Notes: generated by a model not told the origin, from the sequence alone. A stretch of 64,000 nucleotides of DNA from IMGVR_UViG_3300021057_000274:325332-389331; one strand, 5' to 3'; positions 10,972-54,449 are shown, counted from the stretch's first letter. Program-made: numbers and translations.

Positions 10972-11546
10972 TGCCCCACAGGGTTAACGAGCGTGACAAC
11001 TTCATCGGTGGATGGTACACCGAGAGGCTTGACATCTGCTCGAGCTTGATCGGCCTGTTCTGGGACTCTTCAGAGGAGCACAAGGCGGGGCTCATGAGCC
11101 GCGGGCTTGACCCGGCGATCAAGGAGTCTACCGAGCTGAGCTGCGATCAGCAACCCAAGGTGATCGAGTACTTCAACGAGATTCTCGTGCCGACGGTCAA
11201 GCTCTACCTCGAGAAGTACCCGATGTGCGGTTATTACTCGAGCTGGGGCCTCGCGTTACCGGCTAACCTGCAGTACTATAAGCCTGGGCAAGCGTACCAC
11301 GGCTGGCACACCGAGAGGTTCGCGGCGTCGGAGCCCGCGGGTCGACGACATCTCGCGTGGATGACGTACCTCAACACGATTCACGACGAGGGCGAGACTG
11401 AGTTCTATCACCAAGGAGTCAAGGTCAAGCCCGAGATCGGGTTGACGCTCATCTGGGGAGTCGACTGGACGTTCACTCATCGCGGCGTCCCCTCACCGAC
11501 CGCTCACAAGTACATCATCACCGGTTGGTTCAACTTTATCGATTGA
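10968..11546 (+). CDS. 2OG-Fe(II) oxygenase (prolyl hydroxylase-like)
   Basis: WHTE, MTYLN, GETEF, FTHRG, KYIITGW. Confidence 0.85.
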   Translation: MMPHRVNERDNFIGGWYTERLDICSSLIGLFWDSSEEHKAGLMSRGLDPAIKESTELSCDQQPKVIEYFNEILVPTVKLYLEKYPMCGYYSSWGLALPANLQYYKPGQAYHGWHTERFAASEPAGRRHLAWMTYLNTIHDEGETEFYHQGVKVKPEIGLTLIWGVDWTFTHRGVPSPTAHKYIITGWFNFID

Positions 11547-35039: not shown

Positions 35040-37703
35040 ATGTTGCTTCGCGAGACCAACGACTCACAGTTTGACAGCAATCTCGACGGATCGGCTAGCA
35101 CCACGACGGTAGCCACCGTCGACGTCAGCTCAAAGATCTTCTCGATCCTCTCGGACGGCATCTACAAGGACAAGATCCTCGCCGTTGTCCGTGAGGTCTG
35201 CTGCAACGCCTACGACGCCCACGTCGCGGCTGGCAAGAAGTCCGTTCCGATCCACATCAAGATGCCGACGTGGAACGACCCGTCGTTCGCGGTCGACGAC
35301 GAGGGTACCGGGATCGATCCGTCCCAGATCACCAGCATCTACCTCTCGTACGGCAAGTCGACGAAGACGAGCTCCAACGACCAGATCGGCGCGCTCGGCC
35401 TCGGTTGCAAGTCACCTCTCGCTTACACCAAGAACTCGTTCATCATCAAGAATCGCTGGAACGGGACAGAATACACCTACTTCATTTACCTCAACGAACG
35501 CGGCATCCCGGCGATGTCGAAGACGAGCGAGATGCCCGTCTCCGAGGCGAACCGCCTCCGTGACGAGAAGGGGCAGCGTGCGGTCAAGGACTTCGGCCTG
35601 ACGGTCGAGTTCGCGGTGCGCAAGGATGACACCCACGTCTTCCGCAGTCGGGTTCAGCGCTTCTTCCGCTACTGGGGCGGAGCGCTCCCAGAGGTTTCGG
35701 GCGTCAACGACGACCTCTTCTCCTCGACCAAGGTCAAGAAGGTTCTCAACGGGAGCGACTGGTTTCTCGAGGCTAAAGAGGACGACGACCGCGACTTCCG
35801 CGGCGCCGTCGCGATCCAGGGCAACGTGCCCTACCCGATCGAGTTCGACTCCCTGCCGAAGCTCCCGAAGGAGCTGCAGGTCATCGTTCGCAATCCGTTC
35901 GTCATCGTCTACGACATGGGCTCCCTCGCGTTTCAAGCCTCCCGCGAAGCCCTCTCGTACGATGACATCACGGTCAAGAACCTGGTCGAGCGCTTCGAGG
36001 ACGTCAAGGCGGACCTCGTCAAGACGTTCAACGCGACGGTCTTCAAGAAGGGGCGTTCGCACCTCCAGTTCATCCACGACCTGGTCGAGAAGTTCCGCAC
36101 CTTCCAGAAGAGCGTGTCGCACATCACGACGAATTCGACCGACGTTGACGACCAGTACTGCCAGTTCCTCTTCGGGCAGCCCCTCGAGACGGCGACGGTC
36201 AAGTACGACGGCGCGACCTTCTCGATCAAGGATCTCCTGCAGGGTAAGATCGTTACCCGGCACACGACCGGGCACCAGAACTTCACGCTGATGTGTCTCG
36301 AGCCGAAGGGCCGCAGCGGTCGCCGCACTGTGCTGACGCACAAGACGACGGTCAACTACGTGCTAAACAAGGAGATGCGCGAAGAGGAGCTCTTTCCGGA
36401 GACTGACCATCGCGTCATCCCGACGAAGGACAAGAAGATCGCTAAGGGACAGTGCTTCTCGATGCCGTGGCGCACCGACCGTGTCAACAAGAAGGACGAC
36501 TCCGACTTCGCGAACGTCATCCGACACGCAAAGAACTTCAGCATCACGACCGTCAATCGCATCCCGGTGCAAGGGCGCTTCGGCGTCGCGAAGGTCAAGA
36601 TCGTCCTGAACGACTGTGTCAGCACCGGCGACGCTCGAATGAAGGCCCTTCTCACCCACATCGAGTACGCGAGCAAGGCCGTGTCGCCGCACTTCATCTA
36701 CGTCACCTTCGACCCAAAGGTGACTGACGTCGCCGAGGTCAAGAAGCAGATCGAGGTGCTGATCCAGACTGGCTTGAAGGGCGCCGAGATCGAGCTGCTC
36801 TCGTCATACCCCGACCATCGCGCGATCGTCGATCGCGAGGCGAAGGAGCGTGGGAAGTTCAAGCTATCGACCCGCGAGATCGCTATCTCGAGAGAGTCAA
36901 CGACGATCTCCCTCGGCTACAACCAGTCGGCCGATCTCAACGACGTCACCTTTACTGACAAGCAAGAGGTCTTTTCCCTCGACGCCATGCAGGCGATGCC
37001 GATGGTCGTCTATTGCTACAAGGGGCGCGGTGCTGGCCAGTTCTTCGATCGGAGCGTTAACCCGGACGATCGTACTCTCTCACTGGCGAACAACAGCGAC
37101 GCTCTCAGCCTCGCCCATCATCTCGGCGTGCTGACCAGGGTCTTTGACGAGGCGAAGAGCTGCAAGGTCTTTACTCTCGCTGAGAGCCAGAAGAACTGGT
37201 TGGGGGCTCGGGGCGTCAACCTCGTTCCGTTCGAGGACCTGATGATCAAGTACACCGCTGAGATGAGCAAAGCGGCTGGGGACTACCGGAATCGAATCGC
37301 GAAGACGATCTGTATCCGAAACATCGGCCAGATCAACAGCTTCTATAGCAACTACGAGCGACTGTGCGCCAAGAACAAAACGCGCTTCGAGGGCTGGGCG
37401 AACCCGAGCCCTTTCATCGACACGGTTCTCACGATCATGAACCAGTCGAACGACAAGCGCGACTTCATGGTCGAGGCCCTCAACCAACGCCTCAACGGAA
37501 GCTCGATCCAGATCAGCGCCAGAGAGACGGCTGCGATCACGAAGGTGATCGAGAGCCGATACCCGCTGCTTCATCGCGTTTACCTGTCGACGCACGACAA
37601 GTCGATCTTCGAGGCGATCCTCGATTACATTGATCTGGTAGATCAGCGCGCGGCGAGCGCTCCAGCGGCGCAAGTTGGCTCAGACGACACGGCGAGCGCT
37701 TAG
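35040..37703 (+). CDS. rIIA: rIIA-like protein (N-terminal GHKL/HSP90-like ATPase)
   Basis: KIFSILSDGIYKDKILAVVREVCCNAYDAH, D.GTG, YGKSTK..SN..IGALGLGCKSP; directly upstream of rIIB-like gene. Confidence 0.8.
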   Translation: MLLRETNDSQFDSNLDGSASTTTVATVDVSSKIFSILSDGIYKDKILAVVREVCCNAYDAHVAAGKKSVPIHIKMPTWNDPSFAVDDEGTGIDPSQITSIYLSYGKSTKTSSNDQIGALGLGCKSPLAYTKNSFIIKNRWNGTEYTYFIYLNERGIPAMSKTSEMPVSEANRLRDEKGQRAVKDFGLTVEFAVRKDDTHVFRSRVQRFFRYWGGALPEVSGVNDDLFSSTKVKKVLNGSDWFLEAKEDDDRDFRGAVAIQGNVPYPIEFDSLPKLPKELQVIVRNPFVIVYDMGSLAFQASREALSYDDITVKNLVERFEDVKADLVKTFNATVFKKGRSHLQFIHDLVEKFRTFQKSVSHITTNSTDVDDQYCQFLFGQPLETATVKYDGATFSIKDLLQGKIVTRHTTGHQNFTLMCLEPKGRSGRRTVLTHKTTVNYVLNKEMREEELFPETDHRVIPTKDKKIAKGQCFSMPWRTDRVNKKDDSDFANVIRHAKNFSITTVNRIPVQGRFGVAKVKIVLNDCVSTGDARMKALLTHIEYASKAVSPHFIYVTFDPKVTDVAEVKKQIEVLIQTGLKGAEIELLSSYPDHRAIVDREAKERGKFKLSTREIAISRESTTISLGYNQSADLNDVTFTDKQEVFSLDAMQAMPMVVYCYKGRGAGQFFDRSVNPDDRTLSLANNSDALSLAHHLGVLTRVFDEAKSCKVFTLAESQKNWLGARGVNLVPFEDLMIKYTAEMSKAAGDYRNRIAKTICIRNIGQINSFYSNYERLCAKNKTRFEGWANPSPFIDTVLTIMNQSNDKRDFMVEALNQRLNGSSIQISARETAAITKVIESRYPLLHRVYLSTHDKSIFEAILDYIDLVDQRAASAPAAQVGSDDTASA

Positions 37704-37708
37704 AGTTG

Positions 37709-43851: not shown

Positions 43852-44147
43852 AGCTCTTGCAAGAGTTGCTCGAGATTCTCTCAGAGGCGATCGTCGAGCC
43901 AGAGCTCACCCGTAAGGCTGAGCTTCACCACGGCACGCAAGACTACTTCATCGGCGTAGACGCGTTCAAGAACGCCCTCGAGAAGAGCGACCTGCCCGAG
44001 GATGTCAAGGCTGACGTGATCGACGAGATCTACAAGCATGACTTGCGTCAGCTGAACTACACGATCATCTATCAGCTCTGTCAAGACGCCGGGCATGAGG
44101 AGCATCTCGGCAAGATCATCAAGTTAGCAGGCTTTCGCAAGCACTAA
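43848..44147 (+). CDS. small late protein
   Basis: MKLLQELLEILSEA. Confidence 0.65.
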   Translation: MKLLQELLEILSEAIVEPELTRKAELHHGTQDYFIGVDAFKNALEKSDLPEDVKADVIDEIYKHDLRQLNYTIIYQLCQDAGHEEHLGKIIKLAGFRKH

Positions 44148-44158
44148 CTCAAAAGCAG

Positions 44159-44187
44159 TGTACTTCTGAGAGAGTTTGAGTTAAAAT
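44159..44187 (+). promoter_or_regulatory. sigma70-like early promoter
   Basis: TGTACT-N17-TAAAAT. Confidence 0.7.
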
Positions 44188-44222
44188 TCTCTTATCCCAT
44201 CCAGCAAGGTCATCTCCCAAGC

Positions 44223-44600
44223 ATGTTCTTTGTTGAGGCCCGGTACCCGTACGAGAGCAACGCCGTTTTGGGCGGTCGCTCTACCCTCGAGGCCGCCGTC
44301 GCTCTGGCGGAGAAGTGTGCCCGTGACCAGCGCTTCATGCACTATGACCAGATCGCGGTCATCGAGATTCCGTCCGAGGACTTCGACACCGGCTACTTGA
44401 CCGGAGCCTGGGGCATGGACGAGTACGTCGGCCCGCGGACGGTGCACTGCATCGACGTCGAGCAGTACCTGCGCCTCGTTGACCACGAGGCCTTCGAGGC
44501 CGAGGAGGCGTCGGGCCGTGAGTACGACGCGCTCGCAGTGTTCGGCTGCTTCGGCGGGAAGGCCGACTACCGGAAGACCACCGGAAAGAGGGCAAGCTGA
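44223..44600 (+). CDS. hypothetical protein
   Basis: 125 aa after promoter. Confidence 0.65.
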   Translation: MFFVEARYPYESNAVLGGRSTLEAAVALAEKCARDQRFMHYDQIAVIEIPSEDFDTGYLTGAWGMDEYVGPRTVHCIDVEQYLRLVDHEAFEAEEASGREYDALAVFGCFGGKADYRKTTGKRAS

Positions 44601-44917
44601 GAGAGCAGACAGGTTGGTTAGTCTGTGACAAGCATGTTTGCTTGTATGACGAGCGCACGAAGCTACATCGCTGCGTGAAGCACGGGGCGATCTTGGGATA
44701 CCGTCACTGGTTGACGGGACTGACCCGTCAAGAAGCTCGCAAGAGATTGAACGAGGATCGAGATGCTCAAGGGCGTTGAACGTACCCGAGGTTGTTGGTT
44801 CGGCTCTGGTAACTCTGGGCGCCGTGGGCGTCGGCAGCTAGAGCGTAAGCTCCGCCGTGCAGGTAAGCGGCATCTCCGTCGATCGGATCTGGCTCGTGAG
44901 CTGAGCGTTAGTCTAGC

Positions 44918-45268
44918 ATGAACCTCAAGCCCTGCCCCTTCTGCGAGTCAGTCGCCGAATTTGTTCCGGCCGATAGCGTCGACGGAGCTATGATCGGTTG
45001 CTCAAATCGGAAGTGTCCCGCGTTTCTGCTTCTCCTCGTTGAGCCCGGTGACACGGTCGAGCGCAACGTTGAGCTCTGGAACAATCGGACAGAGAAGAAG
45101 CTGAAGGCCGCTGAGAAGATCTGTCGTGACGCCGCTGAGCGACTAGGGAAGGCGGCCTCGGAAGAATGGGCGAGCCATGACGTTGAGGCGGCTAACATCA
45201 GGCAAGCTCAGAGCAGTCTCGCGTCACAGCTCGCTGATGGAATTCGAGCCCTCATTCGCGATGGCTAA
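44918..45268 (+). CDS. Lar-like (restriction alleviation) Zn-ribbon protein
   Basis: LKPCPFC...C....C...WNNR. Confidence 0.65.
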   Translation: MNLKPCPFCESVAEFVPADSVDGAMIGCSNRKCPAFLLLLVEPGDTVERNVELWNNRTEKKLKAAEKICRDAAERLGKAASEEWASHDVEAANIRQAQSSLASQLADGIRALIRDG

Positions 45269-45509
45269 GTGTCCCACCTGCGGAGCACCTGTCGCTAGGC
45301 CGGGCGGCGGCCCAGATGCCCAGTTCATATTCAAGAAGAAGCCGGTGCGCCGGCGCGCCGCGGCGCCGAAATTCGAAACTCTAGAACGCACTCGTGAACG
45401 CTTCGAGCAGTGGTTCAAGATGGACCTGTTCGGAGGCGAGCGCGACATGACGTTGAAGCATCAGCTTTGGACGGCGTGGCAGGTGGCTCACCTTGGTAGG
45501 TCTGGCTAG
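45261..45509 (+). CDS. hypothetical protein
   Basis: MAKCPTCG; FEQWF...W.AWQ. Confidence 0.55.
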   Translation: MAKCPTCGAPVARPGGGPDAQFIFKKKPVRRRAAAPKFETLERTRERFEQWFKMDLFGGERDMTLKHQLWTAWQVAHLGRSG

Positions 45510-45514
45510 GCTTC

Positions 45515-46060
45515 ATGACTTGGCGTAAGCCGCTGAAGCTTAGGCTCGTTGAGACGAGCGACGGCGAGTCTTTCAAGATCTTCTCAAAGGACACGACTGG
45601 CGTTCCGGTCGGGAGTCATCCAGGAGCGTTCGGAGTCGTCCGAAAGCACCACGTCCACGAGGGCGTCGACCTCTACGCGCCAGTGGGCACGCCTGTTTAC
45701 GCGGTAGAGTCAGGTGCGGTCGTCAGAGTGCTGCCGATGACCGGTCCAGCCGCAGGGTCACCGTGGTGGTTCGACACGAAGGCGGTGATGGTCGAGGGGC
45801 GGTCTGGAGTCGTCGTCTACGGAGAGATCTCTCCTGCGGTACAAGAAGGGCGAGTGATCTTCGCAGGTGACGTCGTCGGACACGTCATCCGTGTCCTTCG
45901 CCATGACAAGGGGCGCCCGACCAGCATGCTTCACCTCGAGCTCCATCGCATGGGCTCGCGCAGCTGTCTGGACTGGAATCTGCCCCCGGCGAAGCCGCCC
46001 GAGCAGCTGCTCGATCCTACGCCGCACCTGTTGCAGATCTGCCGCAGGCATCGTAAATAG
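45515..46060 (+). CDS. M23 family peptidase
   Basis: HEGVDLYAPVGTPVYAV..G.V; MLHLELH. Confidence 0.85.
   Translation: MTWRKPLKLRLVETSDGESFKIFSKDTTGVPVGSHPGAFGVVRKHHVHEGVDLYAPVGTPVYAVESGAVVRVLPMTGPAAGSPWWFDTKAVMVEGRSGVVVYGEISPAVQEGRVIFAGDVVGHVIRVLRHDKGRPTSMLHLELHRMGSRSCLDWNLPPAKPPEQLLDPTPHLLQICRRHRK
46054..46059 (+). promoter_or_regulatory. T4-late-like promoter
   Basis: TAAATA upstream of 46082. Confidence 0.55.
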
Positions 46061-46081
46061 CTCTTTATCGGAGATCACCAC

Positions 46082-46417
46082 GTGGAATTCAAGAACTTTC
46101 TGAGAGAGGCTAAGATCGACCACGACGAGCTGATCAAGAAGGGCGTCGAGGCCTTTAGAGCCGTCGCGAAGTACCTCACAAAAAAGTTCCCCAAATCAGA
46201 AGACGGATGGACCGACGAGGCCTTCTTCGACCCGAAGACCGAGTGCTGGTACACTTACGAGTACGTCAGCATGAAGTCTGGAGATGAGGTTTTCCTCTAC
46301 CTCAAGACCGACCCTAGCGGAAAGGTTGAAGAGGTTAACGAGTTCACAGACGCTCAAGTTAAGTCTTGGGTGACCGATGATGATCTGATCGCAGAGATCA
46401 CCGAGCAACTGCCGTGA
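46082..46417 (+). CDS. late protein with capsid-targeting-like N-terminus
   Basis: MEFKNFLREA. Confidence 0.7.
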   Translation: MEFKNFLREAKIDHDELIKKGVEAFRAVAKYLTKKFPKSEDGWTDEAFFDPKTECWYTYEYVSMKSGDEVFLYLKTDPSGKVEEVNEFTDAQVKSWVTDDDLIAEITEQLP

Positions 46418-46839
46418 ACTTCAAGAACTTTCTCGCGGAGGCTGCGGCCGACGCTTACTACCACGCGACCCTCACCAAGAACGCTGACCAGATCAAGGAG
46501 AAGGGTCTCACCAAGTTCAACGCCTCGAACTGGGTCAAGGCCGCGAGCAAGGAGCGCTACGGCGACGGCGCGATCTTCGCCTTCGAGAACGAGCTCGACG
46601 CGCTTCGCTGGGCAGGCAAGATGGACTGGGAGTTCAACAAGGGTTTCGGCACCGGAAAGGTCTCGATCGTCAAGCTTCGCGTTTCAGATCCTGAGGCTTG
46701 GAAGGTGGATGACGCTGACCCGCTAGGTCAAGCAGGATCCAAGGGGCGCTGGATGAAGAGCCAGGACGCGGTCAAGGCGACCGACATCATCTCGATCACT
46801 CCCGTCAACGCAGCCGATATCAAGCGCGCGACCAAATGA
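46414..46839 (+). CDS. ADP-ribosyltransferase-fold-like late protein
   Basis: MNFKNFLAEA; YYHAT....I.EKGL...IFAF...A..W...IVKL pattern. Confidence 0.55.
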   Translation: MNFKNFLAEAAADAYYHATLTKNADQIKEKGLTKFNASNWVKAASKERYGDGAIFAFENELDALRWAGKMDWEFNKGFGTGKVSIVKLRVSDPEAWKVDDADPLGQAGSKGRWMKSQDAVKATDIISITPVNAADIKRATK

Positions 46840-47195
46840 GAATTGATGAGATCGTAGGCGAGCTCCCGGTCGGTGCTCGAGTAAAGGGTACCATCCTCGA
46901 GACGTCCGAGGAGGGCGACAAGGAGTACTTTGGCACGGTGATCGATCCCAAGCTAGCCGATAGCGGCGAAGTTGACGTGGAGGGCGATCATGGAGAGGTA
47001 GGTCTCTTCATCAAGCCAGATCATGATGACATCGTCATGGCTTTCACGCGAGAAGGTGATCACTGGAGGCATGACGCCTACGGCGGTTACTACGAGGTGA
47101 CGAAGTTCCAGGTCGTCAAGACCGAGCAGTCGAAGAGGGGTCGTTGCCCGCACGGGGTGGCTGCTGGTAACCGCTGCGAGAAGTGCGACGGATAG
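46836..47195 (+). CDS. late protein
   Basis: MRIDEIVGE; C-terminal CPHG...C..C. Confidence 0.6.
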   Translation: MRIDEIVGELPVGARVKGTILETSEEGDKEYFGTVIDPKLADSGEVDVEGDHGEVGLFIKPDHDDIVMAFTREGDHWRHDAYGGYYEVTKFQVVKTEQSKRGRCPHGVAAGNRCEKCDG

Positions 47196-47234
47196 GCTCA
47201 GGCTGGTGGTAGTCCATCCGGATACACAAAGTTG

Positions 47235-47263
47235 TTTACTTCCGTCGAGAACTAATATATAGT
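47235..47263 (+). promoter_or_regulatory. sigma70-like promoter of the tRNA operon
   Basis: TTTACT-N17-TATAGT; leader ATG 8 nt downstream. Confidence 0.8.
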
Positions 47264-47271
47264 ATCATACC

Positions 47272-47337
47272 ATGACGAACGTCCTATCACTTAGCTTGAG
47301 CTGGTCCCTGTCCTCGTATCTCGGGGAGAGGCCCTAG
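47272..47337 (+). CDS. attenuator leader peptide MTNVLSLSLSWSLSSYLGERP
   Basis: Codons 5-18 CTA TCA CTT AGC TTG AGC TGG TCC CTG TCC TCG TAT CTC GGG match downstream tRNA anticodons; stop lies in the antiterminator strand. Confidence 0.85.
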   Translation: MTNVLSLSLSWSLSSYLGERP

Positions 47338-47386
47338 TCTCTATGTGATCTGACGAAAAGTCGACAGATTCTAGACCTAGGGCCTC
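47328..47386 (+). promoter_or_regulatory. antiterminator helix
   Basis: GAGGCCCTAGTCT (47328-40) pairs with AGA(C)CTAGGGCCTC (47373-86); inner ATCTG/CAGAT hairpin. Confidence 0.8.
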
Positions 47387-47409
47387 CAAGTGAGGCCCTA
47401 GTCGTTTTT
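47377..47409 (+). terminator. attenuator terminator
   Basis: CTAGGGCCTC-CAAGT-GAGGCCCTAG 10-bp stem plus TCGTTTTT. Confidence 0.82.
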
Positions 47410-47445
47410 GCAACGCGCTCTTTTACAATTCGGAAGCAGTACCTT

Positions 47446-47532
47446 GCCAGACTGGCGGAATCGGCAGACGCGCTAGTCTCAAAAATTAGTACCCGTGAGG
47501 GTGTCCCGGTTCGAGCCCGGGGTCTGGCACCA
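47446..47532 (+). tRNA. tRNA-Leu(CAA)
   Basis: GCCAGAC/GTCTGGC acceptor, CT-CAA-AA loop, long V arm, TTCGAG, CCA. Confidence 0.92.
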
Positions 47533-47533
47533 A

Positions 47534-47621
47534 GGATGGTTGGCAGAGTGGCCAATTGCACCTGGCTGTAAACCAGGCGCCCTGACGGGCTTCGGTGGTT
47601 CAAATCCATCACCATCCACCA
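47534..47621 (+). tRNA. tRNA-Tyr(GTA)
   Basis: CCTGG-CTGTAAA-CCAGG, long V arm, TTCAAAT, CCA. Confidence 0.93.
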
Positions 47622-47626
47622 ACATT

Positions 47627-47718
47627 GGGTCTGGTCATAAGGACGGGTGGTCCTGTCAGGAGCCTGTAAAGCTCTTCCTCAGCGAGGCACGGAGTTCGAT
47701 TCTACCCCAGACCCACCA
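47627..47718 (+). tRNA. atypical tRNA-Tyr(GTA), 8-bp acceptor
   Basis: GGGTCTGG/CCAGACCC, GGAGC-CTGTAAA-GCTCT, enlarged D arm, short bulged T stem, CCA. Confidence 0.7.
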
Positions 47719-47722
47719 AATT

Positions 47723-47812
47723 GGAGAGTGAACCGCACGGGGTGTGGCACTGCCTGGAAAGCAGTCGGGCTGGCGTAAGCTGGTCGCGGGTCGGGACCGC
47801 CGCTCTCCTCCA
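47723..47812 (+). tRNA. tRNA-Ser(GGA), 8/4 fold
   Basis: GGAGAGTG/CGCTCTCC, 6-bp D stem, ACTGC-CTGGAAA-GCAGT, GCGG/CCGC T stem, CCA. Confidence 0.85.
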
Positions 47813-47830
47813 AGTTGTAGAAGTAACGCT

Positions 47831-47919
47831 GCCCTCGTGGACAAATTGGTAAAGTTGCCAGGCTCAGAACCTGGAGCCGCGAAAGCGTATTGTCGGTTCG
47901 ACTCCGACCGAGGGCACCA
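47831..47919 (+). tRNA. tRNA-Leu(CAG)
   Basis: CCAGG-CTCAGAA-CCTGG, long V arm, TTCGACT, CCA. Confidence 0.92.
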
Positions 47920-47927
47920 ACACGAGA

Positions 47928-48010
47928 CCCCTCGTGGCAAATGGAAATTGGTACACCTACTAGATCGAGAGTCTAGGCTTTTCTCGGTTCGAATCCGAGC
48001 GAGGGGACCA
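47928..48010 (+). tRNA. atypical tRNA-Leu(GAG): short V arm, C33
   Basis: CCCCTCG/CGAGGGG, CTAGA-TCGAGAG-TCTAG, TTCGAAT, CCA. Confidence 0.65.
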
Positions 48011-48014
48011 GCAT

Positions 48015-48107
48015 GGAAGACGAACCGAGAAGGTCTCGGACTCGCCTTGAAAGCGATGGGATCGCGGCCAACCCGTGATTGGGGATCATCTCCTCCGTCT
48101 TCCGCCA
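48015..48107 (+). tRNA. tRNA-Ser(TGA), 8/4 fold
   Basis: GGAAGACG/CGTCTTCC, CCGAGA-AGG-TCTCGG D arm, CT-TGA-AA loop, T loop ATCATCT, GCCA. Confidence 0.82.
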
Positions 48108-48111
48108 GTAT

Positions 48112-48195
48112 GCGAGCGTGGTGGAATGGTATACACACGTGCCTTAGGAGCACGTGCCGCAAGGTATGTGGGTTCGACTCCCACCGCTCGCACCA
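48112..48195 (+). tRNA. tRNA-Leu(TAG)
   Basis: CGTGC-CTTAGGA-GCACG, TTCGACT, CCA. Confidence 0.93.
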
Positions 48196-48206
48196 AAGGA
48201 GACGAC

Positions 48207-48404
48207 ATGAACCTCAAGTCTAGAGAAGCAGGTGAGCTGATCCAGGGCATCCAGGTAAACGAGTCTCGCAGGGTGAAGTACTCGTCCTGGTACCACGCGA
48301 TCGCTCGAAACAGAGGAATCACGATCAGGACGAGGAGGGTGAGCGATGACGAGATCATCGTCACCCGGATCGAACCCAAGGATGACGAACTAGTCAGGGA
48401 CTAG
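48207..48404 (+). CDS. small protein inside tRNA cluster
   Basis: AAAGGAG SD; 65 aa; 3' end overlaps tRNA-Ser(CGA). Confidence 0.6.
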   Translation: MNLKSREAGELIQGIQVNESRRVKYSSWYHAIARNRGITIRTRRVSDDEIIVTRIEPKDDELVRD

Positions 48405-48467
48405 CGCTGCCTCGAAAGCAGATGGACTCGGAAACGGGCTGGGGGTCGGGACCTCCGTCATCCGCCA
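48380..48467 (+). tRNA. tRNA-Ser(CGA), 8/4 fold
   Basis: GGATGACG/CGTCATCC, CTAGTC-AGG-GACTAG, CT-CGA-AA loop, GCCA. Confidence 0.85.
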
Positions 48468-48573
48468 AGGAAGCAAGCAGGCGCTGGCAACGGCGTTTGG
48501 AGACTCATGACCTTTTTGACGTAGCTTTTGCATGCTGCATCAGACGAGCGACCTCTACTTAGGAGCCTTTATC

Positions 48574-48847
48574 ATGAACGACACCGAGCTGCTGAACGCG
48601 ATCAACAAGTACAGGTTGCATCCGCTCCCCTCAAGCTTTCTGGGTGGGGAGTACTGGAGGTGTCTTTGGACACCCTCGAGTTCCAGCACCAGCTGAGGGA
48701 TTTCCGAACAAAACGAGAAGCGTCGAGGTAGTCGGGTTCGGACGAACGGTCAGAGCAGCCGTTCGTGACTGTGTCGAGAAGATGAGAGCGACGATCGCCG
48801 ACGGAGGTAGGATGGCGATGTTCGACGGCACTGACGATGGAGAGTGA
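48574..48847 (+). pseudogene. split small gene (+1 frameshift at CCC-T 48673-76); pseudogene or programmed frameshift
   Basis: AGGAG SD; MNDTELLNAINKY... stops at 48696; the +1 frame continues ...GRTVRAAVRDCVEKM to 48847. Confidence 0.45.
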
Positions 48848-48934
48848 ACCGGGGAGGCCCTGGGACCGCCTGCTAAGCGGATCGTCTGGGAGCGCGAGCT
48901 CTTGGATGCGGATCGAGACCGCCGCTCTCCGCCA
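48839..48934 (+). tRNA. tRNA-Ser(GCT), 8/4 fold
   Basis: GGAGAGTG/CGCTCTCC, CCGGGG-AGG-CCCTGG, CT-GCT-AA loop, GCGG-ATCGAGA-CCGC, GCCA. Confidence 0.85.
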
Positions 48935-49046
48935 GAGCAAGGTGAAATTTCGCGGCGAGAACCAAAGAGCGTGACCGGCTGCTACCGGGCTACGCATCGA
49001 ATCGCGGTAACGAGGATCCTAGCAGGGAATTCCCTCACCTTGCTCT
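48934..49046 (+). ncRNA. unidentified structured RNA
   Basis: 12-bp terminal stem AGAGCAAGGTGA/TCACCTTGCTCT filling the gap between two tRNAs. Confidence 0.5.
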
Positions 49047-49051
49047 ACCTT

Positions 49052-49138
49052 GCCTGCGTGGCGGAACTGGTATACGCGCAACGTTGAGAGCGTTGTTCCC
49101 TAACGGGATTGAGGGTTCGAGTCCCTCCGTAGGCACCA
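49052..49138 (+). tRNA. tRNA-Leu(GAG)
   Basis: CAACG-TTGAGAG-CGTTG, long V arm, TTCGAGT, CCA. Confidence 0.93.
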
Positions 49139-49145
49139 AGACGGA

Positions 49146-49241
49146 TGAGTGGGGGAATGGGCAATCCCTGGGTTAATCCCTGTGCGAGTCATGTCGCGCT
49201 GCCTGCCAGTAGGTGGAATTGTAGGTTCGAGTCCTATCTCA
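49146..49241 (+). ncRNA. degenerate or multi-arm tRNA-like element
   Basis: Canonical T arm GTAGG-TTCGAGT-CCTAT, D-like arm, three internal hairpins, weak acceptor, no CCA. Confidence 0.4.
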
Positions 49242-49269
49242 GAAAGTACTGGCCGCATCGTCTTATCTC

Positions 49270-49343
49270 GGGTCGTTGGTGTAGTGGCAGCACAGGAGCC
49301 TCCAAAACTCTTAGTCAGGGTTCGATTCCTTGACGACCCGCCA
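49270..49343 (+). tRNA. tRNA-Trp(CCA)
   Basis: GGGTCGT/ACGACCC, CT-CCA-AA loop, TTCGATT, GCCA. Confidence 0.88.
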
Positions 49344-49405
49344 GCTGTGTCCAGTGCTAAAATACATCGGTACCGCAACGGGCGAAGGGTACCGAGCAGT
49401 TCAGT

Positions 49406-49480
49406 AGGGGATTGGTGTAGTGGTAACTACGCGGAGCTCCAAACTCCGAGTCGGGGGTTCGATTCCCTCATCCCTTGCCA
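49406..49480 (+). tRNA. tRNA-Trp(CCA), second copy
   Basis: AGGGGAT/ATCCCTT, CGGAG-CTCCAAA-CTCCG, GCCA. Confidence 0.9.
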
Positions 49481-49481
49481 A

Positions 49482-49599
49482 GCACATCACGATGGTGGCG
49501 AGTCGTCCCAGCTCGTCTGGGCGCAGCCGAGGTGAGATTCCTCGGTGGCATTTCCGGTTGTAGCCCACCCGCTCGCGCCAAACCGGCTAGGTGATGTGT
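49482..49599 (+). ncRNA. unidentified structured RNA
   Basis: CACATCAC/GTGATGTG closing stem; internal CCCAG/CTGGG and CCGAGG/CCTCGG hairpins. Confidence 0.45.
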
Positions 49600-49605
49600 G
49601 GTTCT

Positions 49606-49684
49606 GGGTCGGCAGCTCTTGGCAACTGCGTGGGACCCTTCCCAAGGGAAACGCGACGAGGGTTCGATTCCCTTCCGATCCACC
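49606..49684 (+). tRNA. atypical tRNA-Gly(CCC)
   Basis: GGGTCGG/CCGATCC acceptor, CCC-TTCCCAA-GGG anticodon arm on an extended GCGT/ACGC stem, GAGGG-TTCGATT-CCCTT. Confidence 0.55.
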
Positions 49685-49903
49685 GGGGCAGAAGGCCGAA
49701 GGAAGGCCACTTGTAAAACACGGACGAGCTCCAGTAAAATGGGCGTCTCCATCAAGAACGTCGTCGAGTACGGTTAACAGATTGCACCGGGCGAAGCTCC
49801 TGCCAAGGGGTTAGCAGGGAAGCAGGTTTCCAACGGCGGCGTTGCCTGAAGTAATGACTCAGGTCGGAGGCGTTTGCGGGTTCGACTCCCGCCTGCCCTA
49901 CCA
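49685..49903 (+). ncRNA. 219-nt tRNA-like RNA (acceptor + T arm + CCA with a large structured insert)
   Basis: GGGGCAG/CTGCCCT-ACCA; GCGGG-TTCGACT-CCCGC; 49741-50 pairs with 49866-75; 49757-66 pairs with 49834-43. Confidence 0.6.
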
Positions 49904-49924
49904 GAGGTACTGCTTTCGAATCAC

Positions 49925-50007
49925 GCCGGCGTGGCTAGGACAAATTGGGACAGTCACTGGGCTTAAACCCCAGGCTCGTGAGGGTTCGAATCCCTCCGTC
50001 GGCACCA
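49925..50007 (+). tRNA. atypical tRNA-Leu(TAA): short V arm
   Basis: GCCGGCG/CGTCGGC, CTGGG-CTTAAAC-CCCAG, TTCGAAT, ACCA. Confidence 0.8.
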
Positions 50008-50014
50008 CAAAAGT

Positions 50015-50020
50015 TAAATA
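50015..50020 (+). promoter_or_regulatory. T4-late-like promoter
   Basis: TAAATA 4 nt before GTG 50025. Confidence 0.6.
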
Positions 50021-50024
50021 GGCG

Positions 50025-50939
50025 GTGAGCTCCTTCCGCCAATTTCTTCTTGAAGCCAAGTCCGTCAAGGACTATCGGCACGAGGATCGCTTCGACGACC
50101 TCGCCTACTGGCCCCGCAGAGAAGATCCTCAATTCATGGCGCCCTCCGAGGGATTTCATTTTACCTATCACAAGGGTGATCTCATCCTCCACAGCACCGA
50201 CAATGCGGTCTATTCGAGCGTCGTCGCGACCGGTCAGATCGAGGCTAAGCGGGCCGGCAAGATCAAGGACTACAAGATGGACTCCAGCCTCTGGAATCAC
50301 TTCGGCGGCAAGGTCGACCTCAAGAACAAGGTCATCACCGTGAGCAAGGAGTCTGTTGGTGACAAGATGCGCCAGCGCTCGATCAACGACGTCAAGGACA
50401 TCCAGGCCGCGTTCAAGAACCTCCGCAAGTATGGCGTCACGGACGACTTCAAGCTCAAGGGTGTCCCGTCTCCATACAATGGAATGAAGATGGGCGACTT
50501 CCTCAAGCACCCCGACCCCGTTCAAACGATGATGGGAGGCGGCGGCCAAATCATGTATCACGGAACCTCGAAGAAGCGCTGGAACGAGAAGATCTCTCGA
50601 GAGGGTCTGCGTCCAGGAAACACGGGCGAGATCTACGTCGATCTTGTCAAGGGCTATTCTGAGGAGAACGTTTACCTCGCAACGACCGCCAAGGTCGCCG
50701 AGTTCTACGGCAAGCGTCAGGCCGAGAAGGATAACGATGATGGTTACGTCATCCTCAAGGTAGAGGTACCTGACTCCGCCAAGCTCCGCCCCGACGATCA
50801 CTTCGCGGTCTTTCTAACGAAGAACAAGGACAAGGAGCACGAGATGCAGAAGAGATCGGTTCAGGAGCTCGGCTCGCTAGCTTATAGAGGTAGGATCCCG
50901 GCGAGGTTCATCAAGATGCTCAGCGCCCGGAGAGCTTAG
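50025..50939 (+). CDS. late protein with capsid-targeting-like N-terminus and C-terminal ART/Tpt1-like domain
   Basis: MSSFRQFLLEA; MYHGTS....I..EGLRP...VYLATT...A..Y...VILKV...YRGRIP. Confidence 0.65.
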   Translation: MSSFRQFLLEAKSVKDYRHEDRFDDLAYWPRREDPQFMAPSEGFHFTYHKGDLILHSTDNAVYSSVVATGQIEAKRAGKIKDYKMDSSLWNHFGGKVDLKNKVITVSKESVGDKMRQRSINDVKDIQAAFKNLRKYGVTDDFKLKGVPSPYNGMKMGDFLKHPDPVQTMMGGGGQIMYHGTSKKRWNEKISREGLRPGNTGEIYVDLVKGYSEENVYLATTAKVAEFYGKRQAEKDNDDGYVILKVEVPDSAKLRPDDHFAVFLTKNKDKEHEMQKRSVQELGSLAYRGRIPARFIKMLSARRA

Positions 50940-51260
50940 AGCTTTTTCTCGCAGCTCTTGAACTTTAGCTACTCTAGCTGCGATGTTGTCGCCCTCCCGC
51001 TTCCAACCTAGAGCTCTCCGATAAGCTCCTAGCTTTCCGTTTCTCGCGAGCTGCTGTTCATCCACCTCGATCTCATGCGTAAATGGGGCTACGTAGATCG
51101 CGTCGACAGGACAATAGACCTCGCAGATGAAGCACGTTTGGCAATCTTCCTTCCTAGCGATGATCGGAATGGTCTTAGTCGTGTCGAAGACGTTGGTGGG
51201 GCACACCTTGACGCACTTGTCGCACGAGATGCACCGATCGGCGCTAAGTAATTCGATCAC
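50877..51260 (-). CDS. 2x[4Fe-4S] ferredoxin (AsfB/AprB-like)
   Basis: CISCDKCVKVCP and CQTCFICEVYCP. Confidence 0.9.
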   Translation of the reverse strand: MIELLSADRCISCDKCVKVCPTNVFDTTKTIPIIARKEDCQTCFICEVYCPVDAIYVAPFTHEIEVDEQQLARNGKLGAYRRALGWKREGDNIAARVAKVQELREKALSSPGAEHLDEPRRDPTSIS

Positions 51261-52707
51261 GACGTACCCAGATAGAATCTAACCCCCCGATGTTGATGTA
51301 GTCATGTTGGGCAGGATCCTGGTGCGGATGGTCGAGCCTGATGTGATATCCGCGCGTCTCCGTTCGCTCTAACGCGGCGGTGGCTCCCCAACGGGCCGCG
51401 ATGATCATCGCGGCGGCTTCACGAGATTTTACCGGAGCAGAGTGATCTGACCCGTTCCTTATCTGCTCCCAGAGGCCGTCAAAAATCCTCAGAGAGCTTA
51501 AGAGCTTTTCTCGGGTCCTGAACATGGTTTTATCTAGGGGAAGGATTTCAGCTTGTGTTGCTTTGATCACTCGGCGAGCGTCGAAGCTCGCGGATCCTAA
51601 CCCTGCCGCTGCGCGAGACGTAGCGTTGATGATCTGGCTGCGTTCACGAGCAAAGGATGCTGCTCCCCTCCCAGCTATGTTTCCGCTCCCGACGACCCAG
51701 GTCATGTAAGCCTCTGGAATCAGCCACGCGCCGACGACAGGCGTCCTGCACGCGACATCTCCTGCGGCGTAGAGCCCGATCGCTGTGGTCATGCACTCGT
51801 CGGTGACGTGGATACCTCCGCTCCCTCTCATGGTGCCCTCTAGGACGCAATCGATCTCCCACCACTCCGTGAAGGGGTCAATTCCGAGCTTCTCGAACAC
51901 GAGAAAGAGGTTAGGTTGCATGACCTTCATCACGCTGCGGAGGTGCGTCGGTGCCTTGTTGAGCTTACACCTCACTGGACCGCGTCTCAGCGCTTCTGCA
52001 ACTTCAAACTTCTCGGTTCTGGAGATCTCGCGCCCGTCGGCGTCAACGAAGGTGGCGTATTTGTAGTACAAGCCCTTCGTCATCGACGTTCCCTTCGGAG
52101 CGTAGCTGTAGAAGTTTCCAAACTCCATCCCCGACAGCTCAGCTCCGACCTCACTGGCCATCAAGAGCCCGTCGCCGGTGTTAGTGTTTCCCCCGAGGGT
52201 CGAGCTTAGCCAAGAGCATCCGCCTGTCGCTAGAACGGTCGCCTTCGCCTCCACCTCCCACGGCGTGAACTCTCGTTGAGATTGACGTCCGCGCGCGCCT
52301 GAAACTATTCCTGATTCATCGACGAGCAGCTCTAGAGCTGGCGAGTGATCTAAGATCTTGACACCCGACTTTAAGAGCTGACGTCGAAAGATCCGCATGA
52401 CCTCTAAGCTCTGGAGGTAACGATAGTGCTTGGTCCAGCTCTCTAGCTTATGCTCATTTTTAGCTACTTCGAGGATGATCTTGAATTGACGGTACTTTCG
52501 GGCGAGATATCCTCCGGCGGCGTCATACGGGGTGAATGACGAGATGCTTCTAGCGGTACCGCAAGACGCGGCAGCCATTGATCCGCTGGTGCTGACGAAG
52601 CCCTTATCAGCGATGACGACCTTGGCCCCGTGACTCAAGGCGGACAGGGCGGCCCAACATCCAGCAGGTCCTCCTCCCAGAATCAACACATCTGCTTGCA
52701 GCTTCAT
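51244..52707 (-). CDS. FAD-dependent oxidoreductase (AsfA/SdhA/AprA family)
   Basis: DVLILGGGPAG, VLATGG, NTGDG, GLYAAGD, RTETRG.H.R.D.P. Confidence 0.88.
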   Translation of the reverse strand: MKLQADVLILGGGPAGCWAALSALSHGAKVVIADKGFVSTSGSMAAASCGTARSISSFTPYDAAGGYLARKYRQFKIILEVAKNEHKLESWTKHYRYLQSLEVMRIFRRQLLKSGVKILDHSPALELLVDESGIVSGARGRQSQREFTPWEVEAKATVLATGGCSWLSSTLGGNTNTGDGLLMASEVGAELSGMEFGNFYSYAPKGTSMTKGLYYKYATFVDADGREISRTEKFEVAEALRRGPVRCKLNKAPTHLRSVMKVMQPNLFLVFEKLGIDPFTEWWEIDCVLEGTMRGSGGIHVTDECMTTAIGLYAAGDVACRTPVVGAWLIPEAYMTWVVGSGNIAGRGAASFARERSQIINATSRAAAGLGSASFDARRVIKATQAEILPLDKTMFRTREKLLSSLRIFDGLWEQIRNGSDHSAPVKSREAAAMIIAARWGATAALERTETRGYHIRLDHPHQDPAQHDYINIGGLDSIWVRRDRIT

Positions 52708-52712
52708 CACAA

Positions 52713-52718
52713 TATTTA
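52713..52718 (-). promoter_or_regulatory. T4-late-like promoter
   Basis: TAAATA on - strand 5 nt before ATG 52707. Confidence 0.6.
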
Positions 52719-52746
52719 TTTGGCCAAGGGAGGCACGTCCTGACTC

Positions 52747-52754
52747 TATAAATA
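52747..52754 (+). promoter_or_regulatory. T4 late promoter consensus
   Basis: Exact TATAAATA. Confidence 0.7.
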
Positions 52755-52803
52755 CCGAGAAGTTCTGGTGTGCACATACGCATATCTAGTCTCGGAGATC
52801 AGA

Positions 52804-53721
52804 GTGAAACTTGTTCTCGCAGCACTCCTAGCAGCCTTTTCCCTCCTCGCAGCCCCCGCACAAGCGCAATCCGGTAGACCAGACATCCTCGAGGTGATCA
52901 AGATCGAGGGCGGCATCGGTGATCACACGACTCGAACCGTCAAGGATCAGGTCGAGAAGATCAACGACAATCAGCGCATCAAGGCCGTGCTCATGATCGT
53001 CGACTCCCCGGGAGGCTCCGCGGTTTCAGCCGCGGCCGTTCACGAGGAGCTCGGCAAGATCAAGGTCCCGGTCGTCGCGTGGTGCAACAACATCTGTGCG
53101 TCGGGCGGAGTGTACGTGATGATGGCGACCTCGGTCAAGTACATCGGGGTTCGCACCGAAGCGATCGGCGGAAGCGTCGGCGTGATCGTGTCGGCGACTA
53201 GATATCACCGCTTGCTCGAGTGGGCGAAGATCGACAGCGAGACTTACAAGAGCGGATCTCTCAAGGACGTGTGGAACCCAACTCGGGCACCTGACGACGA
53301 GGAGAAGAAGTACATTCAGGGCCTCGTGGACGAGCTCGCCCAGACCTTCTACGGCGTGGTCAAGGCCGCTCGGGGCAGCAAGATCAACGAGGAAGCGTGG
53401 CGCGAGATCAAGCGCGCGAAGATCTTCTTCGGTAAAAACGTGGTGAAGATGGGATTGGCCGACTCCGTCATGACGCTTGAGCAAGCCGCGGCGAAGGCGA
53501 AGGAGCTCAGCGAGTCGAAGGCGATCTACACCAGAGACGAGCTGAAGAAGATGTCACAAGCCGCCGAGGACAAGCCTGGGCACGGTCCGTACATGCAACC
53601 GTCGCCTCATCCGATCATGGGTGGCCTCCCACAGAACGTCGGTGACCTGATCGACATGGTCAAGGAGATCCGAGAGGGAGAGTCGGTGAAGTTCGAGTAC
53701 AGGATGCCGTACAAGTTCTAG
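52804..53721 (+). CDS. sppA: S49 peptidase (SppA-like) with signal peptide
   Basis: VDSPGGS, CASGGVY, GSVGV, KSGSLKD; GTG 52804 followed by a signal peptide. Confidence 0.82.
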   Translation: MKLVLAALLAAFSLLAAPAQAQSGRPDILEVIKIEGGIGDHTTRTVKDQVEKINDNQRIKAVLMIVDSPGGSAVSAAAVHEELGKIKVPVVAWCNNICASGGVYVMMATSVKYIGVRTEAIGGSVGVIVSATRYHRLLEWAKIDSETYKSGSLKDVWNPTRAPDDEEKKYIQGLVDELAQTFYGVVKAARGSKINEEAWREIKRAKIFFGKNVVKMGLADSVMTLEQAAAKAKELSESKAIYTRDELKKMSQAAEDKPGHGPYMQPSPHPIMGGLPQNVGDLIDMVKEIREGESVKFEYRMPYKF

Positions 53722-53740
53722 CAGCATTGACGGCTTGGTG

Positions 53741-53770
53741 ACGGAGAGCGATCGCTCTCCGTTTTCATTT
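53741..53770 (+). terminator. Rho-independent terminator
   Basis: Palindrome ACGGAGAGCGATCGCTCTCCGT plus TTTCATTT. Confidence 0.75.
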
Positions 53771-53796
53771 ACAAGACTCGCAACACTTGATATAAT
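53768..53796 (+). promoter_or_regulatory. sigma70-like early promoter
   Basis: TTTACA-N17-TATAAT. Confidence 0.85.
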
Positions 53797-53820
53797 CATC
53801 CTCTAGACATCGGAGGCGAT

Positions 53821-53994
53821 GTGACTACCGAAGAGCTTTACGCGTTTCTCAGGGAGAACCTGAGCATCGAGATCACGGAAGGGCCGGGCGGTTTCACCGA
53901 CCCGAACGGGAGAACTGTCAATCTCAAGCTCGGTGACGACGTCATCTCGACGGCGTACTTCAACGTGCGCCAGACTAGGGAATACGACGGATGA
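53821..53994 (+). CDS. hypothetical protein (57 aa)
   Basis: GGAGG SD, GTG start, ATGA overlap with next gene. Confidence 0.6.
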   Translation: MTTEELYAFLRENLSIEITEGPGGFTDPNGRTVNLKLGDDVISTAYFNVRQTREYDG

Positions 53995-54449
53995 GTGACC
54001 AAGATCTGATTCGCTCAGTCAAGCGAAGCTCACGCGTCACGCCGCTCGCATACCGCGGTGACGAGGTCGAGGGCGGAGAGTACAAGTCCGTTCCTCTCGG
54101 CGTAAACGGTCCCCACGCACCGATGAAGAGGGAGTCCGAAGCGATCCGACGCGCCATGGCAGAGACCGGTCGTACGGAGGAGGACCTCAGGCAAGATCCT
54201 CACTACCGAAAGCTCTTTTCAGAGGCCGCGAAGGCCAAGGGCACCAAGACGCCTCGTGAGCGAAAGATCCGCGAGATGCTCAAGGCGGTGCTTCGAGAGG
54301 TGAAGCTTCCGAAGGAGCACCCGAAAACCCTGGAGACGTTGGCCGAGATGTATCGGGCAAAGAGAGGACCGTTTCGGGCCTGGGGTTGGTCATCCGCGAC
54401 GACGATCACTCTCGACGAGCTAGTCTCCTACCTCAAGCATAGCTACTGA
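53991..54449 (+). CDS. hypothetical protein
   Basis: 152 aa. Confidence 0.65.
   Translation: MSDQDLIRSVKRSSRVTPLAYRGDEVEGGEYKSVPLGVNGPHAPMKRESEAIRRAMAETGRTEEDLRQDPHYRKLFSEAAKAKGTKTPRERKIREMLKAVLREVKLPKEHPKTLETLAEMYRAKRGPFRAWGWSSATTITLDELVSYLKHSY

Follow-up and report, generated by a model that had tools for sequence, protein, structure and literature searches.

How does a phage that carries a large array of tRNA genes control their transcription? The question is raised by the final 64 kb (64,000 nucleotides, hereafter the window) of IMGVR_UViG_3300021057_000274, a 389-kb jumbo phage contig from a soil metagenome, in which a promoter, a 21-codon open reading frame (ORF) and a hairpin terminator stand ahead of a tRNA gene cluster. 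We consider it probable that this leader is a ribosome-mediated leader-peptide transcription attenuator, which governs polymerase read-through from a phage promoter to the tRNA genes of the same phage. With less assurance, we also favor the broader view that this soil jumbo phage lineage carries a family of 'tRNA-stat' attenuators, in which each leader is a codon checklist of the anticodons of its array, one for Leu, Ser, Tyr and Trp and a second for the other 16 amino acids, so that shortage or cleavage of any one tRNA, be it through host shut-off, late-infection demand or tRNA-targeting defence, would stall the ribosome and turn on the replacements. The observations comprise the sequence elements, alternative folds computed in silico, the match between leader codons and array anticodons, and the same design in related phages.

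Two further assemblies of the same phage are available (a 395,730-bp JGI contig and a 395,674-bp ENA contig), and the leader sequence is identical in all three copies. No close relative of the window phage was found among GenBank phages, and a near-identity search of 46800-50100 against them returned just one 40-nt tRNA match. The window has a G+C content of 58%, and its ordinary genes are preceded by Shine-Dalgarno (SD) sequences.

The leader promoter (TTTACT-17-TATAGT, 47235-63) is sigma-70-like, with a modest consensus score of 9/12. Its extended motif TGTTTACTT occurs in 2 copies in the 64-kb window against 0.19 expected, the second lying at 37707 in an intergenic gap ahead of a normal SD-bearing gene, and is invariant in an alignment of five promoters from three phages, including the leader promoters of the relatives L017 and L098 described below. 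The promoter named in the original prediction thus held up through motif rarity and invariance despite its score, and on these sequence grounds is taken as real. A promoter scan revealed no further promoter-like site from 47263 to 49711. That scan, with a reading of 47410-47446, also led us to reject a bypass promoter placed after the terminator and ahead of the first tRNA. The leader ATG sits 9 nt past the -10 hexamer, so that an mRNA made from the predicted start site would be leaderless or begin just 2-3 bases before the ATG.

The 12-mer repeat GAGGCCCTAGTC has exactly two copies in the 64 kb, at 47328 and 47392 (64 nt apart), and its complement CTAGGGCCTC a single copy in the window, at 47377. 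The terminator (47374-47409) has a 10-bp stem, or 12-13 bp counting a GAC/GUC extension, followed by GUUUUU; its 3' end lies 36 nt upstream of the first tRNA-Leu, and its tail GTCGTTTTTG is common to the window, L017 and L098 leaders. The central structural claims made earlier for this leader were borne out. Its SD-less 21-codon ORF reads as given in Table 1, sequence scan and folds confirmed that both 12-mer copies can pair with the one complement, and the folds recovered both the 10-bp terminator with its T-tract and the alternative antiterminator.

Under the proposed mechanism, transcription would start at or just ahead of the leader ATG and a ribosome would translate the 21-codon leader, whose codons 5-17 would require each of four Leu, four Ser, Tyr and Trp tRNAs once or twice. 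If all were decoded fast, the ribosome at the last codons or the stop would cover region 2 (47328-37), region 3 would pair with region 4, and the resulting terminator would end transcription near 47409. If one of these tRNAs were scarce, uncharged or damaged, the ribosome would stall before its A site had passed codon 16, leaving region 2 free to pair with region 3; this antiterminator would block the terminator and let the array be transcribed. Since a stall at any sensor codon would open the switch, the leader would act as an OR-gate over about 10 tRNA species, providing negative feedback on supply. Leader translation, its coupling to transcription and stall-dependent read-through are steps that we infer.

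The well-supported anticodons of the array number ten (Leu CAA/CAG/TAG/GAG, Ser GGA/TGA/CGA/GCT, Tyr GTA and Trp CCA), and leader codons 2-16 match all ten. In none of the six frames of the window is there a longer run of array-decodable codons than this one of 14, with 9 for the runner-up, and runs of at least 14 are expected only 3e-4 times in the window. All 12 listed anticodons are sampled by the leader, while same-length segments of long ORFs average 3.7, with a maximum of 11 in 20,000 draws. The five Leu codons of the leader all differ, though 54% of Leu codons in the phage are CTC (P = 0.009). Ser codon diversity was rejected as separate evidence, not being significant alone (P = 0.51). 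The earlier claim that all 14 codons (5-18) are read by downstream tRNAs therefore stands for the ten Leu, Ser, Tyr and Trp anticodons and is weaker elsewhere, the Gly CCC partner being a poor tRNA candidate and the element with a UAA anticodon having a short variable arm.

This match is the point on which a first alternative turns, namely that the small ORF and the hairpin form an independent unit (either a small-peptide gene complete with promoter and terminator, or simply the hairpin that ends the upstream operon), with the array reached by leaky read-through or from other starts and the codon match coincidental. Chance small ORFs are common, and the modest 9/12 promoter score, an ORF without an SD sequence and a terminator favored at equilibrium would all suit such a unit. 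A coincidental match is hard to reconcile with one that lies far above chance in the window and recurs in L017/L098 and in a more distant phage, L221, with different peptides and different arrays. Moreover, with a promoter ahead of it, the hairpin cannot belong to the previous operon alone, and the exact 12-mer duplication makes a competing helix. We regard an independent unit as quite unlikely.

The full leader folds far below shuffled controls (z = -4.5 for the window and z = -4.9 for L017). At full length, the minimum-energy fold combines the ORF hairpin (47301-16 with 47322-37) and the terminator; in a transcript cut before the terminator 3' arm, the preferred fold is the antiterminator (47328-37:47377-86). 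The expectation that the antiterminator forms when the leader is not translated is thus tentative, the fold of the cut transcript agreeing with it and that of the full-length one not. The hairpin between regions 1 and 2 may serve as a pause or protector. Ribosome position was modeled with a mask that hides all RNA up to 12 nt past the first A-site base. On a transcript truncated ahead of region 4, all 10 bp of the antiterminator persist while the A site is at codon 15-16 or earlier, and 5, 3, 1 and 0 bp are left with the A site at codons 17, 18, 19 and 20; the end of the sensor run therefore roughly coincides with the limit of productive stalling. Folding with and without a masked ribosome, as had been proposed, thus gave the anticipated loss of the antiterminator from A-site codon 17 onwards in the cut transcript, but at full length the terminator is favored at equilibrium under most masks.

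Relatives of the window phage were found through a prohead protease encoded 5 kb downstream, which has about 88 homologues (45-60% identity) in soil metagenomes. In two of these relatives, whose proteases are 53-59% identical to that of the window phage, large tRNA arrays adjoin the protease gene (29 tRNAs in L017 and 38 in L098). The arrays (L017, 2786-9914; L098, 11868-17839) cover Arg, Gly, Cys, His, Asn, Asp, Glu, Ala, Pro, Lys, Met, Ile, Val, Phe, Gln and Thr. The amino acids absent from them are Leu, Ser, Tyr and Trp, precisely the window's set, suggesting that the phage tRNA complement is divided into two separately controlled arrays and that this division is conserved.

Within each of these two arrays lies a leader, the two being homologous (82% identity) and having the promoter motif of the window, an ORF of 37-39 codons (MNMMKHTFRTQPRTAICDREIVNAQPEVYVLVIGGGTSN in L017 and MNTMQKHFCETAPRAANREIGKPVDTVSLVIDGGSSN in L098, each followed by a stop), a hairpin terminator and the tail GTCGTTT(T/C)TG, as in the window. 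Their antiterminators are formed by pairing of the 3' part of the ORF with the terminator 5' arm. Regions 2, 3 and 4 diverge between the window and L017/L098 lineages and are mutually complementary within each. In the mask model the productive zones, in which a stall leaves the antiterminator available, are codons 2-26 in L017 (NMMKHTFRTQPRTAICDREIVNAQP) and codons 2-25 in L098 (NTMQKHFCETAPRAANREIGKPVD). Leu, Ser, Tyr and Trp are absent from both zones, which hold 15/16 and 16/16 of the array amino acids, respectively (joint P = 1e-4 and 1.5e-5). What few Leu, Ser and Tyr residues these leaders have all lie downstream of the productive zone, in the structural part. At the level of anticodons, the L017 leader samples 23 of the 26 in its array (P = 0.005) and the L098 leader 24 of 27 (P = 0.0013). 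The indels that separate the two leaders are of 3, 6 and 3 nt within the ORF and of 1, 1, 1 and 2 nt outside it, and these in-frame ORF indels argue for leader translation. Conservation is lowest in the middle of the ORF, with 57% nucleotide identity versus 74-84% in the flanks and helices.

These patterns bear on a second alternative, in which the attenuator is real but is governed by direct binding of its RNA to a ligand (a small molecule, a protein or a tRNA, in the manner of a T-box or of protein-mediated antitermination), the ORF being incidental. T-box elements provide a precedent for tRNA-sensing antitermination, RNA structure is strong in both the window and L017 leaders (z = -4.5 and -4.9), and the window leader has no SD sequence and an unmapped start site, all of which such direct binding would accommodate. 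An incidental ORF would not be expected to keep its frame through the L017/L098 indels, nor its fast-evolving middle to keep an amino-acid set rather than a sequence or structure, nor array-foreign amino acids to be confined to the part downstream of the stall zone; no T-box, riboswitch or leader family in Rfam was matched at E <= 1. Direct binding is unlikely on this evidence, and a translated, ribosome-mediated leader is preferred.

The more distant phage L221 (185-kb contig, 49% G+C) was found via the 304-aa protein gene that adjoins the window array. It has an unrelated leader ORF of 50 codons, an antiterminator and a terminator ahead of a tRNA array reading Gln-Gln-Met-Ala-Arg-Phe-His-Asn-Val-Asn-Pro-Val-Pro-Ile-Ile. 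Codons 2-39 of its leader contain no Leu, Ser, Tyr or Trp (P = 5e-4), and the first Ser is codon 40, exactly the point at which the antiterminator is lost in the mask model. The leader matches 10 of the 11 known anticodons of this partly sampled array. A strict automatic screen over all fetched arrays recovered only the window, L221 and one unrelated ORF.

In all four loci (the window, L017, L098 and L221) a canonical GC-rich hairpin with a U tract occupies this position, and the competing helix always overlaps its 5' arm. This conservation speaks against a third alternative, that the leader is translated and senses decoding, but that its output is tRNA-precursor processing or stability, or Rho-dependent polarity. 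The same ribosome-position logic could indeed expose or hide RNase or Rho sites; given the conserved terminator, we hold such an output to be very unlikely. On sequence evidence, then, there are three essentially independent leaders (the window, the L017/L098 pair and L221) with the same predicted architecture, each with a composition that tracks its own array. The proposal of trp-type attenuation by a leader spelling out the anticodons of its operon is supported by the window together with L017, L098 and L221, and the suggested check of related phages for leader codons that follow tRNA content found this correspondence in all three.

Several points weigh against the attenuator as proposed. 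The leader ORF of the window has no SD sequence upstream, so its translation would have to be leaderless, and the start codons of the L017 and L098 ORFs are uncertain. Leader codons 2-4 (Thr, Asn and Val) lie inside the stall-competent zone and have no array tRNA. The limits of that zone themselves rest on the assumed footprint (A site +12 nt). In the full-length RNA most masked states favor the terminator at equilibrium, which would require control to be kinetic, like that of classical attenuators; region 4, having the same sequence as region 2 and a local loop of just 5 nt to close, could displace the antiterminator. Being homologous, L017 and L098 amount to about one replicate, which gives some three independent cases overall. 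No Leu/Ser/Tyr/Trp array was found in relatives (the 8/4 Ser tRNA pattern matched many unrelated phage arrays and bacterial loci), and the window leader and its helices consequently lack a direct covariation test. Regarding expression, no public RNA run is listed as holding the leader. A soil metatranscriptome contains two exact contigs inside the array (49155-49323 and 49452-49612, comprising spacers and tRNA parts) and none on the leader; these contigs hint at a transcribed array precursor, but could be DNA carry-over.

Other searches for further cases were negative. Extension of the L017 and L098 contigs by 10 kb revealed no Leu/Ser/Tyr/Trp (class II) array, a conserved 18-mer from the class I leader has no match in IMG/VR, and the protease relatives L096, L212-L215 and L391 have no array start within reach. 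Homologues of the 304-aa protein usually do not adjoin tRNA arrays.

Classical leader-peptide attenuators include those of trp, his, leu, thr, ilvGMEDA, ilvBN, pheA and pheST, of which those of thr and ilv respond to more than a single amino acid. The window leader resembles these systems (PMC1183508, PMC3082878) in having a promoter, a short ORF, alternative 1:2, 2:3 and 3:4 hairpins and an intrinsic terminator, in having regulatory codons cognate to what the operon supplies, and in the predicted logic by which a ribosome at the stop leads to termination and a stalled one to read-through. It differs in that the target is tRNA genes, not enzymes or a synthetase, and in its checklist design, in which from 10 (window) to about 22 (L098) anticodons are each sampled once or twice, for up to 16 amino acids. 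It is also phage-encoded, the window leader being SD-less, beginning at the predicted transcription start and matching no Rfam leader family.

A T-box binds one uncharged tRNA directly via a specifier codon and the T-box sequence, without translation. T-box riboswitches are alike in that tRNA status decides between terminator and antiterminator ahead of translation-related genes, and differ in that the evidence here favors a translated ORF. A T-box or other Rfam element was sought with cmscan (44000-54000 against Rfam 15, E <= 1) and rejected, the search giving only tRNA-clan matches and one spurious small RNA match.

Phage tRNA arrays have been interpreted as codon compensation or as counter-defence, replacing depleted or cleaved host tRNAs (PMC10264068, PMC11555353, PMC12409363). 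These studies treat tRNA function, and a sensor of tRNA-array transcription was not found described in them; nor did full-text literature searches find a description of a sensor controlling phage tRNA-array transcription. The remark in the original prediction that no described multi-isoacceptor attenuator of a phage tRNA array was known likewise withstood these searches. The mechanism is classical, and as far as the searches show, the tRNA-gene target, the checklist design and the phage setting are new.

With respect to the natural trigger, host tRNA decay, late-infection demand and defence nucleases of the kind treated in PMC10264068, PMC11555353 and PMC12409363 are candidates. Surveillance of host defence, with an anticodon nuclease as the trigger, is speculation, and plain supply-and-demand feedback fits equally well. 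If the attenuator reading is correct, these phages gauge each tRNA species by trial translation and make more only when one is missing, which would explain how large tRNA arrays avoid being a constant cost. The leaders would be the first known attenuators of tRNA genes, and the first in which, rather than one codon being repeated, many isoacceptors are sampled (10-22 anticodons, for up to 16 amino acids). The debate over phage tRNAs (codon compensation, host tRNA decay or counter-defence) would become testable by which perturbation opens the switch. The leaders would also provide an internal key to the codons read by non-canonical tRNAs (the 8/4 Ser tRNAs and odd tRNA-like genes), and a compact natural multi-tRNA sensor for synthetic biology.

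Table 1. Leader elements and tRNA or tRNA-like genes in the window (coordinates count from its first nucleotide)
Feature	Position	Strand	Description	Basis
Promoter	47232-47263	+	TTGTTTACTT; -35 TTTACT 47235-40, 17-nt spacer, -10 TATAGT 47258-63	consensus scan and motif conservation
Leader ORF	47272-47337	+	21 codons, MTNVLSLSLSWSLSSYLGERP, then stop TAG 47335-37	
Sensor run	47284-47325	+	codons 5-18: CTA TCA CTT AGC TTG AGC TGG TCC CTG TCC TCG TAT CTC GGG	
Region 1	47301-47316	+	pairs with region 2 in untranslated full-length fold (1:2 hairpin, -20.6 kcal/mol)	
Region 2	47322-47339	+	upstream GAGGCCCTAGTC copy (47328-39) and stop codon; antiterminator 5' strand	
Region 3	47374-47386	+	CTAGGGCCTC plus GAC; pairs with 47328-37 (antiterminator) or 47392-401 (terminator)	
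Region 4	47392-47409	+	downstream GAGGCCCTAGTC copy, terminator 3' arm; then T tract 47405-09	
tRNA-Leu(CAA)	47446-47532	+		ARAGORN default, Rfam
tRNA-Tyr(GTA)	47534-47621	+		ARAGORN default, Rfam
tRNA-like element of tRNASec-like shape	47629-47714	+	8-bp acceptor, 6/4 D arm, long variable arm, GUA (Tyr) anticodon	
8/4 tRNA-Ser(GGA)	47723-47812	+		relaxed ARAGORN threshold, consensus fold
tRNA-Leu(CAG)	47831-47919	+		ARAGORN default, Rfam
8/4 tRNA-Ser(TGA)	48015-48107	+		relaxed ARAGORN threshold, consensus fold
tRNA-Leu(TAG)	48112-48195	+		ARAGORN default, Rfam
8/4 tRNA-Ser(CGA)	48380-48467	+		relaxed ARAGORN threshold, consensus fold
8/4 tRNA-Ser(GCT)	48839-48934	+		relaxed ARAGORN threshold, consensus fold
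tRNA-Leu(GAG)	49052-49138	+		ARAGORN default, Rfam
tRNA-Trp(CCA), two genes	49270-49343, 49406-49480	+		ARAGORN default, Rfam
'Gly CCC' candidate, weak	49606-84	+	3-bp anticodon stem, without CCA	
tRNA-like element, weak	49808-49903	+	9-nt loop holding UAA	
tRNA-like element, weak	49925-50007	+	UAA anticodon, short variable arm	28.2 bits against Rfam tRNA (gathering score 29)

The cluster behind the window leader comprises about 16 tRNA or tRNA-like genes, all on the + strand, when ARAGORN is used with a relaxed threshold; ARAGORN at default settings and Rfam find seven (Leu CAA, Tyr GTA, Leu CAG, Leu TAG, Leu GAG and two Trp CCA). The four Ser tRNAs are missed by both and appear only at the relaxed threshold, and three further tRNA-like elements have odd anticodon arms. 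An RNAalifold consensus of the four Ser genes has an 8-bp acceptor stem, a 4-bp T stem, a long D stem, a long variable arm and an encoded CCA, with compensatory changes in 14 of 28 pairs, and the discriminators are U, G, G and G (G73/U73) for the anticodons GGA, TGA, CGA and GCT. By this consensus the four are judged to be genuine 8/4 tRNAs, new members of the known (8/4) tRNASer class, which was defined by Mukai et al. (2017) by a 12-bp acceptor branch divided 8/4, a long variable arm, G73 or U73 and a Ser anticodon, and has already been described in phages (PMC5389517). There is no essential difference from the (8/4) tRNASer and allo-tRNAs of that work (PMC5389517); here they form a complete Ser isoacceptor set and adjoin Leu, Tyr and Trp tRNAs of canonical form. 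Counting Leu and Tyr as well, essentially every tRNA type with a long variable arm is present in the array, along with Trp.

Two small ORFs lie within the array, at 48207-48404 (65 aa, overlapping the 5' end of tRNA-Ser(CGA)) and 48532-48696 (54 aa), with AGGAG motifs upstream of in-frame ATGs at 48208 and 48575. No useful homologues of either were found in 1.8 billion representative proteins.

The leader regions of the related phages show some further features. An exactly conserved 21-mer, TTGAGAGGCTTTATAAATACT (L017 2567-2587 and L098 12056-12076), ends 3 nt before the leader ATG, and TTGAGAG stands 15 nt ahead of the L221 leader ATG; such a sequence may be an unusual ribosome-loading element. 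At 11400-11445, L098 has a second promoter of the same type (GTTTACTT ... TACAAT), followed 6 nt on by a two-codon ORF (ATG GAC TGA), then by 430 nt without a recognised gene and by tRNA-Arg(TCT). The leader stop codon is UAA in L017, L098 and L221 and UAG in the window. A tRNA at L017 3615-3693 has the anticodon UUA, which would read the UAA stop.

Among the neighboring genes, the 304-aa protein encoded directly after the array (50025-50939) belongs to a family with an invariant HGTS motif and no Pfam match. Its confident AlphaFold model (predicted local distance difference test score, pLDDT, 87.5) has an ADP-ribosyltransferase (ART)-type fold, and the best PDB matches are KptA/Tpt1 RNA 2'-phosphotransferases and ART toxin subunits, with low TM-scores (0.22-0.45). 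The protein may act on RNA or tRNA. In distant phages with this protein family, L223-L230 (about 8744-8856), a tRNA with the anticodon CUA, which reads UAG, is present, making stop-codon reassignment or suppression possible there. No homologues of a flanking 119-aa protein were found beyond this phage. The protease gene (52768-53721) is followed by a strong terminator and immediately by a near-consensus promoter, TTTACA-17-TATAAT (terminator and promoter together at 53740-53796), which precedes + strand ORFs starting at 53821. Elsewhere, the window encodes a PrkA/YeaG-like serine kinase and an rIIA-like protein (27914-29839 and 35040-37703), the kinase being 55-58% identical to those of 600-kb 'huge phages'.

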